Shown in pieces: positions 12,042 to 26,062 of a stretch of DNA of 52,308 nt (position 1 is the stretch's first letter; each line of letters begins with the position of its first letter). Under the pieces are notes generated by a model. The model was not told the DNA's origin, did not search any database, and saw only the letters and a program-made list of their open reading frames with translations. A program made the position numbers and the translations under genes. Source of the DNA: Guillardia theta CCMP2712 (Eukaryota; Protista; Cryptophyta); contig NW_005434562.1 in NCBI RefSeq assembly GCF_000315625.1, positions 168,515 to 220,822 on the forward strand. Direction: 5' to 3'.

Positions 12042-15000
12042 GAGAAGGAGGCGGAGGAGGAGGAGGCGGAGANNNNNNNNNNNNNNNNNNNNNNNNNNNN
12101 NNNNNNNNNNNNNNNNNNNNNNNNNNNNNNNNNNNNNNNNNNNNNNNNNNNNNNNNNNNNNNNNNNNNNNNNGGGGGAGGATGACGAGGAGGAGGGGTAG
12201 AGGTGGTGGGAAGTTCTTACTTGGTTGCGAAAAGAGGAGACGACGGTAGTCCAATCGACGTCGGTAAGGAAGCTGCCGTTGACGCGCTGGACCCTGCTCC
12301 TGCCGTAGAGCATACCTCCGATCCTCTCCCCGTCGATCTTTTTAGGCACGTTGCTCCCCACCACGAACTTGTCTACTCCCGTGACCTCCAGCACTCGCTG
12401 CACCTGCGACTTCATCGGATGGTCCGGGCCGAGCGAGCGGATGTCGACGGAGAGGAGGAAACCAACTTGAAACCCGTGCGGGCGATCCACCAGCAGCTCG
12501 CAGCGACCCAGCCCTCTGTTGGTCGCAGACACGATGCAGAGAGCAGAGGAAGAGGCTGCGGATGAGGAGGAGGAGGAGGAGGAGGATGATGATGATGATG
12601 AGGAGAGGTTTTCGTTCTCGAAGTAGGTCTGAGACTGAGTAGCGAGCGACATGTTCCCGATTCTCCTCCTCACTGCCATCCTGTATGGATCTGTTGCTTC
12701 CTCGCTCCTCTCCTTGAGGGCTGGGCGCGTGTGCCCGAGCGGTGCCCACTCGTACTCCTTGCGGAGTTTACAGCAGGCGTTCAGTGCCTCCTTCTCGTAG
12801 CGAGCATGGAGGAAGCGGTCGGGAGCGGAGGAGGGCAGTGCTCCCCCGATGTAGTTGAGCACAGCGTTGACGTCCTCCTCGAATTCCTTGTCCTCCACCT
12901 CCTCCTCCCTGTACAACAAGGAGAAGCCTCGGATCGTCGTCTCCACTGCCATTGGCCACAGCAAGTGCATGACCCTCTGCGGGAACTTGGAGGAGGAGGA
13001 GGAGGAGGAGGTGGTGGTGGTGGTGGTGGTGGAGGAGGAGGAGGAGGAGGAGGGGACAGGGTTGAGTGTCCTCTCGTCCCCGGTCATGTTGGCCCAGTCG
13101 AAGAGGGCCTTGAGAACTTGAGCTCTGCTCCTCTTCTTTCCCTCCTCCTCCTCCTCCAGACTCGCCGCCACCTCCCGCAGACGCGAGATGTCCTTGCCAT
13201 TGTCGCGCCAGGAGGGGACGACATGGTTGAAGAGGGAACACCAGGTTCGCTCGGAGAAGAGCTGCTTTCTCCTCCCCTGCTCGCCGCCCTTCCCTTGCCC
13301 CTCCATCTTCATGCTCATCCTGTAGAGCTCCTGGTCCAACCTCCGCACGTGGAAGGTCGCGACGGGATCATCTTCTGCGGATGAAAGGAAGGGGAAGAGA
13401 AGAACTTTGACCTCCCGAAAGAAAGTTTTTAGCAAGGAGGAGGAGGCGGCTGCGGCTCCCCCCTTGCCTAACAAGTTGGAAAGTGTCGACGTTCTCCTAC
13501 TGTGATCTCAGTGACATGCACGTTTGAGCAAGCAGGAACTGAAGAGCACAGAGACGAAACTTCGGTAGAGGAGGAAGGGAGGGAGGGAGGGAGGGAGGAA
13601 GGAGGGAAGGAGGAACGAGAGGACTGTGTAGAGGTCACCTTGATTCATGGCACTTGAGGAACATGTCGGTCGCATGTTGCACGTCAAGCAGGTTTGATTG
13701 ATCTTTGCAGAAATTGCCGACGAGGAGCAGGGCAGGAGCATCGTGACCTGATCTCGCTCCCAAGCTCGCTGTCTGAGCCCAGCAGAGAAGTTTGCGGTAG
13801 GTCCGAGCAGAGAGAAGATCCTCTCCCGTCACCCACACCAGCACGTCCGAGGTCAGGTACCCGATCCTCGCCAAGTCCACCAGCACCACCTCCCTCCTCA
13901 GCTGGGAGAGGCTGCCTGGGTTGAGCTGAGAAATGCTGCTCTCGAGCTCCCACGAGGGATCCAGCAGGTCTCTTGCTCCGCCCTCGCTCTCTCCTTCCGT
14001 GTCGTTGAGGCGCACCGGCAAACACCTCCTTCCCCCTCCCTCTGCTCCCCCGAGTTGCGTCAGGTACGTCTGCAGCCCACTGGTCTTGCTGCCCATCGTG
14101 GTGGAGGACGAGGAAGAGACGGCAGTTGCTGTGGTGGAGGAGGCAGAAGAGGGGGCTGCCGGTTGTCCCATCCTCATCCTCACGTGAAGTGGAAGTTCGC
14201 CGAGCTCGGGGAGGATGGCGCGCGAGTCGTCGGAGAGAGGATGGAGGAGGAGGAGCTTCCTGCAGAGAAAGCTCTTCCCCGACCCACTCCTGCCCATGAA
14301 CGTTATGGTCTTGCTGGGAGCTTTCCTGGACAGCAGCTGGGCTTGTCGAAGCGCCTCCTGCGGGACAGAGAGGTCGACCTGTATGTGGCGATCTTCTTGG
14401 CGGACTGAGAAGTGAAGCAGCGTCTGAGCTCCGATGCTCTCTGGCTGCATGCTCTGTGGGAGAGTGAGATTCGAGAAGATGGTGTTGTAGCACAAGACGA
14501 GGAGTGGAAGACAAAAAGGAGGAGGAGGAGGAGGAGGAGGAGGAGGAGGAGGAGGAGGAGAAGAAGGAGGAGAAAAGGGAGGAGGAGAAGAAAGGAAGAG
14601 GAGAGTAAGGCTGAGGAAAGGCCAAGGAGGAGGCGGGATTGTGGAGGGTTGTATGGGAGAGGTAAGGGGATGAAGGGGATACCGCAAGAATCTTGGGAGG
14701 GAAGAAGTTTGCGATCCAAGCTGGGAACATGCCATCTTCTTCCTCGTCCTGCGGCTCCTTGCCAGGGACCCCAGCGCTCTCCTCGACCATACGAGCAAAG
14801 GCCTTAGCTGGAACGAACTGCTGCCCACCCGTCGTCCGGGGTAGTTCCCCTCCTGCCATCTCCTCGAGTTTCGCCTTGAAGTTCGCGATGTTTGCGCTGG
14901 AAACGTCAAACTCTCCGAACAGTCGCCTCTCCCCCTCCACGACTTCTTTCCCTTGCTCGCTGCCTCCTGCCTCCTCCTCTAGCGCGCTCAGAAGGTCGTC

Positions 15001-18000
15001 CAAGAGCAGGTGAGGGTAGAAGAGCTCGTGCTCCCTCCTGCCCGCCGCGTGCCGATGCCAGAAGAGCTTTGCGCTGCTGGGCAGCAGCCGGATGGGCACC
15101 GGTACATCAAGGAGGAGGCCGTCAGGGGGCGGGCCCGAGTAAGGCATGAACGGCTCCTCGTGGGGCTGAGCGATGCGGCGGGAGGAGCGGGAGGAGGAGA
15201 GGAAGGGAGCTTCCACTCGTTCGAGGTAGCAAGCGTGGTGGAGGAGGTCCGGCGTCAGGTCCTTCCCCCGACACTCCTCGGGGGGCGATCCCCGCACGAT
15301 GACGGAGGAGGAGGAGGAGACGAAGACGATCTCATGGACGCCATGCAGAGAGTTCCTGCGGGCGACGGAGCCGAGGAAGACGGAGACGAACATGCCTGTG
15401 AGCAGGTCGTGCGGCTCCTTCAGCTGGATCAGACACCGCTCCTCCTGCCCGTCGTCGGAGAACAAGGAGGATACAGAGACGATCATGTAGCGCCGCGTCT
15501 CCTCCGCCTTGAACGGTTGCGACAGGTTCACGTCCAGGGCCGGAGGCTCGACGCCCTTCAAGCGTAGGAGCGTTATCTCCATTCTTGCTGGGCTCCTGCT
15601 GAGCAGCAAGGCCCTGACCTCCTCGAGAGTCTTGTCTTGTAACGAAACGGAGTCGAGGGAAAGCAGCTGGTCCCCCAGCAGGAGAGCGGCAGAGAGATCG
15701 GCGACGCTCCCCCGAATGATCTCCTGAACCACAAACGGAAACTCGCTGCCCAACTTGAGGCCGAACGCTCTCCTTCCCTCCACCTCCACGCTCGTCGTGA
15801 TGATCTCATAGCCCTCTGGGGGCCAAACTTGAGGAGGAGGAGGAGGAGGAGGAGGAGGAGCGGACGAAGGAGAAGTCTGATCCGAAGCAATCTTCTTCCT
15901 CTTCTGTCAACGTCGTCATACCATCGCCAAACGGCAATACACTCAACATAAATTCCATATCATGATCATGATCATGATCATTTGTATCATCGTCATCATC
16001 AATCTTCAGTCTCACCATCGTCATCTTGTATCTTTCCTGGAGCATCTGCAGCTGCTTCTGCCAAGCTAAATTTCTGCCAAATCGTCAGACAAACACCTCA
16101 TCCATCTTCCTTCCCTCCTCGCTCCCCTCCCCCCTTCATCCCCTCCTCCCCTCCTCCCCTCCTCCAACATCATCCAAGTCTTACCTCCTCCACCATCGTT
16201 GAATCTTCAAGATAGCAAAGGACTTGTTGACTACTTTCCTCATCTCGCCGTATCGTTTCATGTCAACTGTACGCCGCAAGCTTGCCTGCCACCATTTCTC
16301 ACTCATTTGGACTGCTCGACTCGGCTCAAGTCTCCTCGACCTCCCTCGCCCCCTTCTGCATATTTCCGTCCTCCTAGTTTCTCTTCATTCATATGCTTCT
16401 GCCCACTGGTATGCTTTCGCCCTCTCCCCTCCCTCCTCTCTCCTCCTCCTCCTTTCTCCTCTCGTCCCTCTTCCCACCTGTAGCGTTGCAGCATACGGAT
16501 TGAGCTCGAGCTTGCGGATGAGCTGCAGCTGACCGAGACGACCAGCAGCGAGGAAGAGCATGGTTCTGCCGAACTTGAAGCTTCCCTTCCCTCCGCTGAG
16601 AGGAACCCAGTCCTCCGGCCGGCTCACCACCGACCCAACTGACTTCCATTCCTTCCTACGAAGCTCCTGCAGGGTAGAAGATAGTAAGGGAGGAATCTGG
16701 GAACAAGGGACGAGCCGAGGCGAGTTTAAGATGGAGGATGTGGAGGAGATCATGCTGGGCTAAAGAAAGAACAGGAAAACGAGGCGCGGAAGTGTGGAGA
16801 GACGACGACAACGTCGAGGAGGAGAAGGAGGCGGAGAAGGAGGAGGCGGCGGCAAAGGCGGAGGAGGCGGAGGAAGAGAAGGAGGGGGAGGCGGAGGAGG
16901 AGGAGTGGAGGAGGAGGAGTGGAGGAGGAGGAGGAGTGGAGGAGGAAGCGGAGGCGGAGGCGGAGGCGGCGGCGGAGGAGGAGGACTTACCTCGAAGATC
17001 TTGGTTATCCCCTCGCGGGGGTTTGAGGGAAGGGAGGAAGAGACTATTTCGCGCGTCCAGAGAGACTTTAATATGATGCTGAGGGAGTCTGGTAAGGGAG
17101 CAGTTGAACAGGGGAAGAAGATGGAACGAAGGGAGACATAGAGTTGAAAGGGTAGAGGTACAGGAAGAGGTAGAGGAAGAGGAAGCTAATGAGAATATTT
17201 GATTACCTGAGATCCATGCCATGTCTGCTCCAAAGTTCCTCATACGTGTATCTTGTTGGCAGACCACCAGCCTGTCAGAGGCTTGAGGGGAGGGGAGGGG
17301 AGGAGAGACAAAGGAGGGGAGGAGAGAACAGTCACGGGCTGTGAGATTGACCTGTGCGAGTTTGACGGCCTGCACGACGCCGTTACTTGACAACTGACCT
17401 GCGACTTTGGCTCGTTCGAACATCAGCGACCTCTTGTGATCGTTGGGTTTGACGCATCGCACGAAGTGCATGTGCGTGTCTTCCAGCGTTGGGATCAGTC
17501 CCTTTCTCTGCCTCCCGCTCCCCATGCCCGCGTCTCGTTCCTCCACCAGCTGGCGCTTGAAGGTTCCTGCAACGGTCTGCAGCTTTGACCTGACGGATGG
17601 ACTTGAAGTCACTTTGTCTGCTAGCTTCCCTGCTCGTACAGGAGTAGAAAACTTCTTATCCTCGTCGTTTTCATTCTCTTCCTCCATTCCGAGGCCTCGA
17701 CGGATCAGCGAGTAGGCCAGGGCATCCTTGACGCCTCCGTCCCCCCCCCCGGCTGTATCGGCGACGAGCATGCGGAGGAAGACGTGGCCTTTGTCGATGT
17801 TCTTCTCGATCATGTGGTCGATACAGTACTCCACGTCATCAGCATAATGGGTGATGACGAACGAGTTGGAGGTTGGGAAGAACCGCCGCTCGTCCCCCTG
17901 CCACATCCTCTCGTCTGTCTTCCCGTCCTTCTTGTACTTGTCGTCCTCCTTCCGTGTTCTACGAAGCACATCGATGAACTCCTTCCCCATCTTGTCATAC

Positions 18001-20590
18001 TCGTCTCTCCTCTCTGCCTCTCTGCAGAAGTCTGCGAGCTTGGAGAACGTCGTCTCAATCCATCGGAGCGCCAGCAGACTCTCCTGGTCCAGCTGCACAT
18101 CAGGCATGTCGTTTCCTTCGAACTCGCTCTCATACAGCTTCTTATCAGCCTCCAGCACCTTCTTGTTGAACAACACTTGTAGACTTTCATTGGCAAAGTT
18201 GATGCAGAGCTGCTCGAGGCTGTTCGCCGACATCCAGCACTTTTGGTGCTTGTCGTAGAAGGAGAAAGACTCGAAGCCGAAGATATCGAGGAGCCCGATA
18301 GAGAGAGAAGAGGAAGCGGAGGAAGCTGCATCCTGCTCGTTCTCCCTCACGAGCTCCATGTTGACATTCTCCCTCAGCCAGGAGAAGAGCTCGCAATACA
18401 CGAGCTTTGCAAGCGAGTCCCGGTTGTTCGCTGCTTGACTGGAGTTGAGAGGTACCCGACCAAACATGCTGTCCTCCTTCTTGATCGTCAGCGCCTCCTC
18501 GAGCTCAGCCGACCCACATTGAACCACATGTGCCGCATCCTCTAGGAACTGTCGGGAGCTGGAGGTCACTCGTGCCCATGGCGTTCCGCTCTGAACCTCG
18601 TCTTCGAACTCGAGGTTGCCGAGGAGGAGGATGAAGGAGAGGATCCGAAAGATAGCAAGGAGATCTTCCGCCATCCCCATCTCACAGATCGCAGTCTGCA
18701 ACATGTTCCACTGCTCTGCCTCGCTCAGGTTCCCCTCGTAGGCATCTTCTGCCTCGAAGGTCCCCTGCTCACCTCCGAGGAACTTGTACTCCTTCATCTC
18801 TCGCAATCTGAGTGATCTTCTCGTGCTCTTGTCCTGCAGCCCCGCCAGCATCATGTAGAACACGTGGAAACTTCGCTCTCCCTTTGACTGGAACGTGACT
18901 CTCGATTTCTCCAGCAAGTAAGTCTGTACTTGAGCCCCTTCAACCGTCTCCCCGCTGCTGTCGAAGCAGAGCTCTAGGTACTTGCCGAACCTGCTTGAGT
19001 TGTCATTCCTCAGCGTCTTTGCATTCCCGAAGGCCTCGAAGATGACATTATTCATCGTGATCTTTCCCACCAGAGACTCTGCTCGTTTCCCTCCCTCTAT
19101 GCTCCCTCCCTTGTTCTTGTACATTCCTGAAGCAACCTCCACAATGTAGCAGAGAACCTCTCGGGCTGACTTTGTCTTTCCTGCTCCACTCTCTCCGCTG
19201 ATCACCACCGACTGGTTCTGATGCTCTGCACTCAGGTTTCTGTACGCGTTGTCTGCTACCACAAACACGTGCGACCTCACACCTTGCTGGCGTGTGTTTC
19301 CTTGCAGACTCGCATAGTATCGCCGCACCTCCTTGTCGTACATTCCGATGGGATGGTCGTAGCCCGGTACAGGCATGTCAAGATGCTTGTACGGGTTGAC
19401 AGCTAAAAGCATGTTTCCGATGTAGCTGTAGATCTTCTCAGACAGAAAGCGGAACTCAACGTTCTGTAGGAGAGACGGGAGGTGGATCTTAGTCATCTCA
19501 GTGAGGTCTTCGTAAACCTTGTTCTCGTCAAAGGGCAGGAAATGAGCAAGCACGTTCGTCTCTGGTTTCATCTTGGCCTTCAGGGTTCCCATCTTAGGTA
19601 CGCTGGAGATGTTCCCGTTCATGTCAACAACATAAGTCTGGTCTTTCTTGATTTCCTTTCTTCCCATGATAGCCCAGGCATTCAGCTCGTGGCGAGTGGC
19701 TTCTCTCATTGCGATGTATCTGCTCTCCTCTTGCCTCAAGGCGTCAGGAAAGGAATCCAGCATCTCATCCAGCGTTGCAAACCCCAGGGATGTAGCAAGC
19801 ACGTCGTCGAGGGAGTGCTCTGACTTGTCCTTAAAAGCTGCCTGCAACCAGCAATGAAGGGCAGTGAGACTAAGACTGCCATACCTGAAGAGAGGAAAGC
19901 TTCATCCCAGATGGGCTCTCCTGTAGGATCTTACGAAGACATTGCTTGACCCCATGGAAAATATCGTCGGAATTTTCTACTACTGCGCTGACCTGTTGGA
20001 TAACACTATTTTAGCTTCAGGTTCAAGAAGCCTTGCCAGTAGCTTCTCACCTTTATCTTCTGCGGGTCGTCAGTCTCTGCGTTCTCTATCGACAAGACTC
20101 TTCGCTTTGTGTGCGCTATGCAGACGTCATCCCACGCCCACAGAAAGAGCGGCTGAGAGTCGAGGGACTTGACCCTTGACTTGAGCTCAATCACTTCATG
20201 CTTCTGCCAGTTCCACCTCTCCCGCTTCCCTGCCCGGATAGCATCATCCTTGCTCGTAGCTTGAGCGACCCTCGGGTGAGTCTTGCGGGGCATCAGAGGA
20301 GAATCAGCGAACGAAGGCGCTTGAGGCTTCTTCTGCGCGCACAGGGTGAACATCACCGTAGCGAGCAAGGCTATTACTGACACTCGATGCTCGTTTCGCC
20401 ATCTTCGCGGCAAGCTCAGACTCCGCGCCATTCTACGCATGAAGTCAGACAAGGGCGTGCGGCTCCCTTTCAAGGATCCTCTCGTACCATCTTGCCAGTC
20501 CAACAAACTTCGTCCGGTGAAGCGCTGCGCTCTTTCAAGCCATCCAAGCCCCTTCGCGCCTCCTCGGCCAACTCTGTTAAATCTCTCCAT
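11535..20590 (-). CDS. Giant multidomain myosin: LOTUS/OST-HTH - motor - 2xIQ - polyPro - PDZ - GB1/RHD3-like P-loop GTPase - C-terminal tail (ends approximate)
   Basis: Motor motifs GESGAGKT, NDNSSRFGKY, LLDIFGFE, EQLCINFANE, HFVRCVKPND, GLPTRYTYEE and FKFGRTMLFL. IQ motifs AATLQASLRR and AILKIQRWWRR. In-frame GT-AG splicing leads into PDZ (FGLKL..GDQLLSLD) and then GRSGSGKS/DTEG. Confidence 0.8.
12073..12172. other. Assembly gap (100 N) within a repeat-rich, probably intronic stretch
   Basis: N run flanked by (GAG)/(GAT) repeats. Confidence 0.99.
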
Positions 20591-21331
20591 TCAATAAAGA
20601 GACGAGAGAGATGAAGGGAAAGGAGACGAAATGGAGAGCTTCGGCTACTGTCAGTGAGACTGTCTACCTCGAACATTTCTATCAGCCTACTCCTGCCGCA
20701 GATCCTGTCTTCCTGTCCTCCTGCCTGTTTGCTAGTCGGGCACCTCTTGCCATGCCTGTCATCACCTTGCCTTCCCTCCTCTCTCCCTGCCTGACTTGCC
20801 CCGTTCGCTACAGCATGGCGATGGCACAGGGAGGATAGCTCTTGGAGGCGCAAGAGTCCTGACACGACAGGGACAGCAGGGGTCAGGGACGTGAGCGCTG
20901 AGGGGGGATGAGGGCGAAGATATCAGCAACGTAGTCTGCAACCAGGTCTGCAGAGGTCTGCAACGTAGTGGGGCAGGTAGTGGGGATGAGGGTCAACTTG
21001 GTATGTGGGGGATGAGGGAATGGTTTTGCCCCTTGGTCATGCAGCTGTTTTGGGTGCACATGGCGATGGGGCAGGATGAGGAGGAGCAGGAGCGGTCGGA
21101 AGATGATCAGGAGAAGCAGATGGAGCAGGATCAGGAGGAGCAGGAGGAGTAAGAGTAGCAGCAGCAGTTGTAGTTGCAGGAACATGTACAGCAAGAGCAG
21201 CAAGAGCAGCAAGAGCAGCAAGAGCAGCAGCAGTTGCAGGATAAGCAGATCAAGGATCAGAACCGAATGGAGATCAAACACTTGTAGAGCAAGAGAATTC
21301 TTCTATTATCAATTTTTATAGTTGTGAAGTC

Positions 21332-24932: not shown

Positions 24933-25674
24933 TTCCAGCCCTCAAGCGGAAGGCCTATCTTGAAAAGAAACATGAGATTATGAAGAACATGATACTTTTC
25001 TCCAACATGGAACATGATCTTGAAGTCAAGGCAAAGACAACATCCTAGGGCGGTCAAATATCCTAGATAGTTCCTCTATTCGTTATTACGAATCAACCTC
25101 TAACCGATGAATACAAAGATGAAACTTGAGAATCCCATGAGGAACCATGGATTTGAATAGCAGGAGGAGATATTTGTTGTACTATAGGAAAATGAAAACT
25201 TCACGAAACCATAGAACATCATTCTCTTATGACAACTACTCGGCTGACATACATGCAAGCCTGACATGACCAATCTCTGTTCTCCGTCTTTGAAATATCG
25301 GCAAGCACACGTGCTATCTGACTATCTGTCTAGTGTTCTTGGTCAACAACTCTCTCAAGATCGAGCATTGTTCTCTTCTGACTGCCTCCCTTCCTTCGCC
25401 TCGTCCCTTGGTTGCCTCCCTACCGCCATGTACCGCCAACCCCCAACCTCCCTCCTGCCCGCCCACACCCTCATCCCCTCCATTGACCATATCATCCCCC
25501 TCATTCTTTTGTCCGTCATGTTTACGGCCCCCCTCAGAGTAAAACATATGGCAGTGATTTTCAGGTTATGCATTCTCCATTCTGTCCTGGTGCCAACATG
25601 CAATGGACGCATGTGGTGCACATGGCATCTCAAGCAATGCCCTTCTCCCTCCTGCCACTCCTCCTGCCACTCCT

Positions 25675-25724
25675 GCTGCTGCTGCGTCTGCGTCTGCTTT
25701 TGCTGCGTCTGCTGCTGCTTCTGC

Positions 25725-25770
<46 letters not shown>
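25675..25770 (+). repeat. (TGC)n microsatellite
   Basis: Visible run. Confidence 0.93.
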
Positions 25771-25771
<1 letters not shown>

Positions 25772-26062
25772 AGCCTCTTCTGCTCGTATTCAGCTTCAGT
25801 TGCTTCGCTCCACCCATTGCCCCTGTCCCCGCTACTTTCATTCTGGCATGCCTTCTGGCGCTCGGCTGCTTAGTACTTGGTTTCTCCTCCCCCTCCTCGC
25901 GCAGCCTTCACGAGTCCTGCGCTTGCTACAAACTGTCTTCTGTTCTCCTGATAGACGATCTCCTCACCTCTTCTCGACGCACCCTCTTCTTACAACAGGA
26001 TGCAAGATCTCGTTTTGATGATTCTTCTTGCGTTTGCTGCTGAGTGACTTGCGCTCGTGTAG

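Follow-up and report, generated by a model that had tools for sequence, protein, structure and literature searches.

A probable LOTUS winged helix, split by an intron, in the N-terminal extension of a giant cryptophyte myosin

The window analysed here is a stretch of 52,308 nucleotides from the cryptophyte alga Guillardia theta CCMP2712 (contig NW_005434562.1, positions 168,515 to 220,822), part of a genome of 87.1 Mb in 669 contigs. Its minus strand carries a myosin gene with a motor-bearing open reading frame (ORF) of 1063 codons (16656–19847). A preliminary description of the window, made from the letters alone, had proposed that an exon missed in the list of ORFs is spliced to this frame and that the joined product forms a LOTUS (OST-HTH) domain ahead of the motor. 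Most probably the gene does encode a LOTUS winged helix, which is split by an intron and lies in the N-terminal extension of a giant myosin specific to cryptophytes. The features of the gene are given below in window coordinates, starting from the 5' end of the transcript.

20488..20575, minus strand: first exon, a 5' untranslated region ending in the probable start ATG at 20490–20488 (contig ends in runs X1, X2 and X4, sequence reading)
20433..20487, minus strand: intron, 55 nt, GT..AG (joint in three runs)
20382..20432, minus strand: 17-codon exon, basic low-complexity leader (transcript contigs, translation)
20333..20381, minus strand: intron, 49 nt, GT..AG (joint in three runs)
20051..20332, minus strand: 94-codon exon, conserved N-terminal domain (transcript contigs, orthologue alignment, model)
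19993..20050, minus strand: intron, 58 nt, GT..AG (joint in three runs)
19885..19992, minus strand: 36-codon exon, linker and predicted first half of LOTUS with helix 1, strand 1 and the start of helix 2 (contigs, translation, alignment, model)
19842..19884, minus strand: intron, 43 nt, GT..AG, cutting LOTUS within helix 2 (joint in three runs)
19710..19841, minus strand: predicted second half of the LOTUS core with the remainder of helix 2, a short inserted helix, LGF-helix 3-PD and the β-hairpin wing (translation, partial Pfam match, alignments, model)
19665..19709, minus strand: conserved post-wing segment (REAT.HE...WA), a possible C-terminal extension of the extended LOTUS (eLOTUS) type (helix in orthologue model, alignment)
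17349..19511, minus strand: myosin motor domain (Pfam PF00063, ORF translation)
12374..17274, minus strand: rest of the gene in several exons, with neck, coiled coil, PDZ-like region and, towards the C-terminus, a long region containing a P-loop (tblastn against P0121)

Splicing was read from the assembled contigs of three runs (X1, X2 and X4, from three different studies) aligned to positions 19300–21100. Four gaps, all with GT..AG ends on the minus strand, are skipped exactly by contigs in all three runs, and the supporting contigs reach a depth of up to 429. The RNA nature of the runs was only guessed, and it is because the contigs lack four canonical GT..AG introns that we take them to derive from spliced transcripts. 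A raw-read RNA run (X17) gave zero coverage over the stretch in the about 6% of the run that was read.

The proposed phase 0 joint between the missed exon and the motor ORF is present in the contigs of all three studies, and the transcripts skip the intron between them. This intron had been placed at 19842–19883; it exists, with true bounds at 19842–19884 (43 nt). Both coding pieces translate as described, except that the peptide begins with ...FHGVKQC... rather than WVKQC. The missed exon itself reaches further in the 5' direction, to 19992 (36 codons), with the LOTUS core starting near 19977. It is not the first exon, as three more lie upstream (20051–20332, 20382–20432 and 20488–20575). Orthologous proteins contain the same sequence uninterrupted, so chance does not account for the frame.

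The contigs of X1, X2 and X4 all terminate at 20575, and the mRNA start lies near there. The first in-frame ATG (20490–20488) makes up the final three bases of the first exon, directly before the 55-nt intron, and is preceded in the same exon by an out-of-frame upstream ORF of two codons (ATG GCT TGA). Upstream of this apparent 5' end, X1 contains a separate low-depth contig of 188 nt (20668–20855), which may stem from an alternative 5' exon or a divergent transcript, or else from carried-over DNA. A database gene call (P0126, 102 aa), with one residue different from the window, reads through the 58-nt intron (19993–20050) and ends in ...KIKVRSY. This suggests an unspliced or mis-modelled record of the locus from a close strain or relative.

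The motor is canonical (Pfam PF00063, E 1.2e-130, 437 bits), with intact P-loop (GESGAGKT), switch I (NSSRFGK) and switch II (DIFGFE). The closest database relative of the motor ORF is a transcript protein of Hanusia phi (90% identical). Two orthologues, P0002 (1649 aa) and P0003 (1134 aa), share 56% identity with it in the motor and have N-terminal extensions that are colinear with the window exons, residue for residue across both junctions. A word search with the N-terminal region found two orthologues only. P0121 (2296 aa) and about twelve fragments came from an exhaustive profile search; one of the fragments is a protein of the cryptophyte Baffinella frigidus. Members of the P0121 cluster are ORFs of 2310 aa on a 7526-nt contig, where extension, motor and tail stand in one uninterrupted frame. 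The window gene is colinear with P0121 from about 20236 to 12374 (tblastn).

About 1,300 further codons (12374–17274) lie downstream of the motor exon. In this part the orthologues have a putative PDZ domain (PF00595), which scores 24.5 bits in P0002, just over the cut-off of 23.2, and 18.5 bits, below it, in P0121. The C-terminal region contains a P-loop (GRRGTGKS in P0121) and Pfam names nothing there. Judging from these sequences, the architecture of N-terminal domain, LOTUS, motor, PDZ and long tail is conserved in other cryptophytes. The N-terminal region has no other match in this genome and the gene is therefore single-copy. The product is one large (about 2,300 aa), single-copy and cryptophyte-specific orphan myosin.

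Frames of homopolymers encoded by trinucleotide repeats (poly-S/A/L/E, CAG/CTG-type) occur at 16656–17200, 20883–21281 and 25566–25873. The first of these is read-through past the real end of the motor exon (near 17209–17274), and the last ≈200 codons of the ORF are therefore intron and not protein.

The encoded LOTUS module is ≈75 residues long. Searches and fold predictions used the window exons singly, and contiguous orthologues served as proxies for the joined domain. On its own, exon 19701–19841 matches Pfam OST-HTH (PF12872) at 11.9 bits (E 0.21), covering profile positions 42–63 in the right register, which is below the gathering cut-off of 23.8 bits; exon 19885–19992 alone gave no PF12872 match. 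The contiguous domains of the orthologues score 14.8–26.8 bits (14.8–21.8 in one scan; 18.9, 19.8, 23.7 and 26.8 in another), so that P0122 (26.8) alone passes, with another at 23.7. The related family DUF7515 scores the orthologue domains similarly.

Profiles built from the myosins gave a clearer answer. Profile A2, made from myosin N-termini only and searched against 1.84 billion representative proteins, returned 32 matches. Those that are not orthologues align only at profile positions ≈75–145, often with several tandem stretches, and the remote matches to multi-LOTUS proteins have E values from 2.8e-14 to 1e-3. Ten of the remote matches were scanned; in each of them Pfam OST-HTH is present well above its cut-off (E 1e-19 to 3e-54), and in six it is accompanied by Tudor. 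They are TDRD5/7-like proteins. Profile A4, made from the domain region of orthologues only, gave just three matches against all PDB sequences, namely the TDRD7 LOTUS domain (E 4.8e-5 and 7e-5) and that of Tejas (0.029). Compared by hhalign with ten N-terminal LOTUS domains of TDRD-like proteins, A4 reached 97.4% probability (E 9.8e-12, 66 columns). A language-model feature search also reaches OST-HTH clusters.

The signature columns considered were K..lR..L in helix 1, a G-hydrophobic strand, LG[FY], and a hydrophobic helix 3 followed by P[DE]. The window exons contain VKQCLRKIL, SGMKL, LGF and MLDSFPD, which align with the corresponding columns of TDRD-like LOTUS domains. At the level of sequence we regard the seed-free profiles as decisive for LOTUS homology, and we have little doubt that the domain is LOTUS/OST-HTH as originally suggested.

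The predicted fold agrees with this assignment. AlphaFold2 (AF2) was run on residues 24–192 of P0002 with an alignment of 59 rows, consisting of orthologues and the retrieved LOTUS stretches. The model has a mean predicted local distance difference test score (pLDDT) of 84, with values of 94–97 across the domain. Its elements follow in the order helix, short strand, helix, short inserted helix, helix, β-hairpin and a further helix. In a Foldseek search the top seven PDB matches are LOTUS domains of TDRD7, TDRD5 and Tejas (template modelling score by target 0.70–0.78). The model is a winged helix-turn-helix, i.e., three helices and a β-hairpin wing, and is closest to solved LOTUS structures.

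By sequence profile and by structure alike, the best matches are the (extended) LOTUS domains at the N-termini of TDRD7, TDRD5 and Drosophila Tejas (PDB 3rco, 2lh9, 3s93 and 8wxs). With these the myosin domain has in common the K..lR..L pattern of helix 1, the G-hydrophobic strand 1, LG[FY], helix 3 followed by PD, and the β-hairpin wing; beyond the wing comes a predicted helix whose T...I..L...Q pattern is loosely similar to theirs. It differs from them in its host, which is a myosin instead of a Tudor scaffold, in its borderline Pfam scores, and in an insertion of three residues after helix 2, where a short additional helix precedes LGF. Moreover, the organism is a unicellular alga without a germline and with no known Vasa. 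The minimal LOTUS domains (MARF1; bacterial and plant NYN-LOTUS), which bind G-rich and G-quadruplex (G4) RNA, score lower structurally than the TDRD-type. They lack the post-wing helix and are usually found in tandem or with nucleases, whereas here a single domain is placed on a motor.

In eLOTUS domains (Oskar, TDRD5 and TDRD7) a C-terminal extension forms helix 5, which is required to bind and stimulate Vasa (Jeske et al., PMC5458760), and LOTUS domains from outside the animals appear to lack it (PMC5458760). The post-wing segment of the myosin (19665–19709) is conserved and forms a helix in the orthologue model (residues 153–162, pLDDT about 76–85). With MAFFT it aligns loosely with the TT.HI..LV..Q helix that is conserved in the N-terminal LOTUS domains of TDRD-like proteins. 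Hidden Markov model alignments span the segment for four of the thirteen N-terminal TDRD-like domains and for almost no internal ones. These observations are suggestive of an extension of the eLOTUS type but do not establish it.

Ahead of LOTUS, exon 20051–20332 encodes a conserved domain of ≈60 residues with the motifs RAGKRE-W-W and FLWAWDD..AHTKRR, which in the orthologue model consists of one helix and three long strands. It has no Pfam match and no Atlas lead, and in the search of 1.84 billion proteins only the myosin orthologues match this part of the profile. The LOTUS domain had been described as occupying the place of the SH3-like domain found in many myosins. It does lie N-terminal to the motor, but the wording was imprecise, as the Pfam motor match begins ≈55 residues after the LOTUS extension. 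Myosin_N (PF02736) gave no match, either to the whole ORF at E up to 10 or to 19512–19700 at E up to 1; by eye the ≈55 residues may be a reduced SH3-like segment. LOTUS is therefore best described as an added N-terminal extension, which need not replace the SH3-like domain.

Two activities of LOTUS domains, with which germline proteins hold RNA or RNA helicases, suggest what this one might do. Binding of G-rich and G4 RNA is reported to be conserved from bacteria to animals and to be an ancestral property of the family (PMC7498356), while eLOTUS domains bind and stimulate the DEAD-box helicase Vasa via its C-terminal RecA domain (PMC5458760). By analogy, the myosin LOTUS domain could serve at the motor's head end as a handle that binds RNA or a helicase, a role to which we would give slightly less than an even chance. 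Such a handle would hold G-rich or G4 RNA, as in the ancestral activity, and/or the C-terminal RecA domain of a DEAD-box helicase of the DDX3/PL10 type, as in the eLOTUS activity. An actin-based motor would thereby be linked to ribonucleoproteins (RNPs) in cis, with no need for a separate adaptor.

A candidate partner is available, as the genome encodes a DDX3/PL10-like DEAD-box helicase (locus L012, G000:C130:173627-176649) with a glycine/arginine-rich C-terminus. At two helix positions, which we take to be equivalent to the LOTUS-binding residues of Vasa, L012 reads Met and Phe (ADMLEEF). The C-terminal domain of L012 is interrupted by introns; in a metagenomic relative where this domain is contiguous, the best PDB matches are DDX3X and the Vasa fragment crystallised with the LOTUS domain of Oskar. 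A complex prediction of the orthologue LOTUS and extension against the RecA domain of this relative, in which the alignments were not used, gave a score of 0.00 and no verdict, and counts neither way. That the domain is a functional eLOTUS which recruits and activates a DDX3/PL10-type helicase, or G4-containing mRNPs, directly at the head end of the actin motor is a further possibility, though we consider it improbable.

Several points weigh against a LOTUS domain that binds RNA or a helicase on this myosin. The Pfam results for the single exons of the window are far below threshold (11.9 bits and no match). AF2 with an alignment of six rows gave an unusable model (pLDDT 41.7), and the fold evidence comes from orthologues whose identity to the window across the two LOTUS exons is 42–53% (A4). 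Furthermore, the alignment behind the good model contained bona fide LOTUS rows, which biases the model towards that fold and makes the fold result dependent on the sequence result. The hhalign alignment ends before the putative eLOTUS helix, and the MAFFT alignment of the post-wing segment is only loose. Binding to RNA or a helicase is something we infer from family precedents. A cargo-binding module beside the motor at the N-terminus would be unusual. To our knowledge Vasa is absent from cryptophytes.

Other explanations of the locus can be set against these data. The upstream exons might be part of another gene, or of a transcript that is minor or aberrant, with the LOTUS-motor fusion being an artefact of assembly or annotation. 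Such a view could draw on the guessed nature of the runs and their use as assembled contigs, on the uncovered raw-read run X17 and on the gene call P0126 with its retained 58-nt intron. It is largely refuted, and its probability is negligible, by the identical joints in the contigs of three studies with all four GT..AG introns gone, and by the orthologues of other cryptophytes that encode the fusion in single ORFs. It is also very improbable, if slightly less so, that the module is a generic winged helix outside the LOTUS family, with convergent or very distant similarity. The modest Pfam scores and the LOTUS rows in the fold alignment would leave room for this, and it too is largely refuted by the seed-free profiles. 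The upstream exon is spliced to the motor and its product matches LOTUS, both by profile and as a winged helix, so that a LOTUS domain fused to this myosin is the reading we retain.

A true LOTUS fold could still have an intramolecular role. The domain might dimerise. Alternatively, it and the N-terminal domain might together dock against motor or lever and so regulate the ATPase or the stroke. This is possible, though on balance we find it rather unlikely. It would fit the position beside the motor instead of in the cargo-binding tail, the constant company of the family-specific N-terminal domain, and the presence in the tail of candidate cargo modules of its own (the PDZ and P-loop regions). 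Oskar LOTUS dimerises in some insects (PMC5458760), and other N-terminal myosin extensions act on ATPase or stroke. However, nothing pointing to docking or to a dimer emerged, and both sequence and fold place the domain closest to LOTUS domains that bind helicases or RNA. RNA binding is reported as a conserved ancestral property of the family (PMC7498356). A binding handle at the head end of the motor, tentative as it is, therefore remains our preferred role for the LOTUS domain.

Accessory domains ahead of a canonical motor are known from many myosins, e.g., SH3-like (classes II, V and VI), WW (IV), kinase (III) and ankyrin (XVI) domains (PMC3942036 and general knowledge), and the myosin described here has this layout in common with them. 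In the RNA transport systems She2/She3-Myo4 and Egalitarian-BicD-dynein the RNA-binding module is a separate adaptor on the tail of the motor, whereas the candidate module here is within the motor polypeptide itself and at its head end. A full-text literature search for myosin together with LOTUS or OST-HTH found no paper describing a fusion of the two, and neither of the large myosin classifications mentions one. All eleven myosins of Guillardia theta have been treated as orphans without an identified accessory domain (PMC3942036). This fits our results because the LOTUS domain is split by an intron and falls below the Pfam cut-off. The LOTUS-myosin is a new domain architecture assembled from known parts.

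The LOTUS domain gives a lead to the function of a giant myosin that is specific to cryptophytes and otherwise unclassified. If it binds RNA or a DEAD-box helicase, the protein would be a directly testable motor carrying an RNP-binding module in cis. A TDRD-type LOTUS domain, possibly an extended one, would then reach into a unicellular alga, while the extension has been thought to be found in animals only (PMC5458760). Should a functional eLOTUS be confirmed, the eLOTUS-helicase module would predate animals and their germline, and in this myosin a motor protein would for the first time have its RNP-binding domain built in, in place of a separate adaptor.

Finally, the genome was searched in six frames with the OST-HTH profile, a type of search that intron-split copies escape. 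The sole match above the cut-off (40.6 bits) lies at G000:C22:526710-526919 (L001) and, by its sequence, is a second LOTUS-containing gene elsewhere in the genome.
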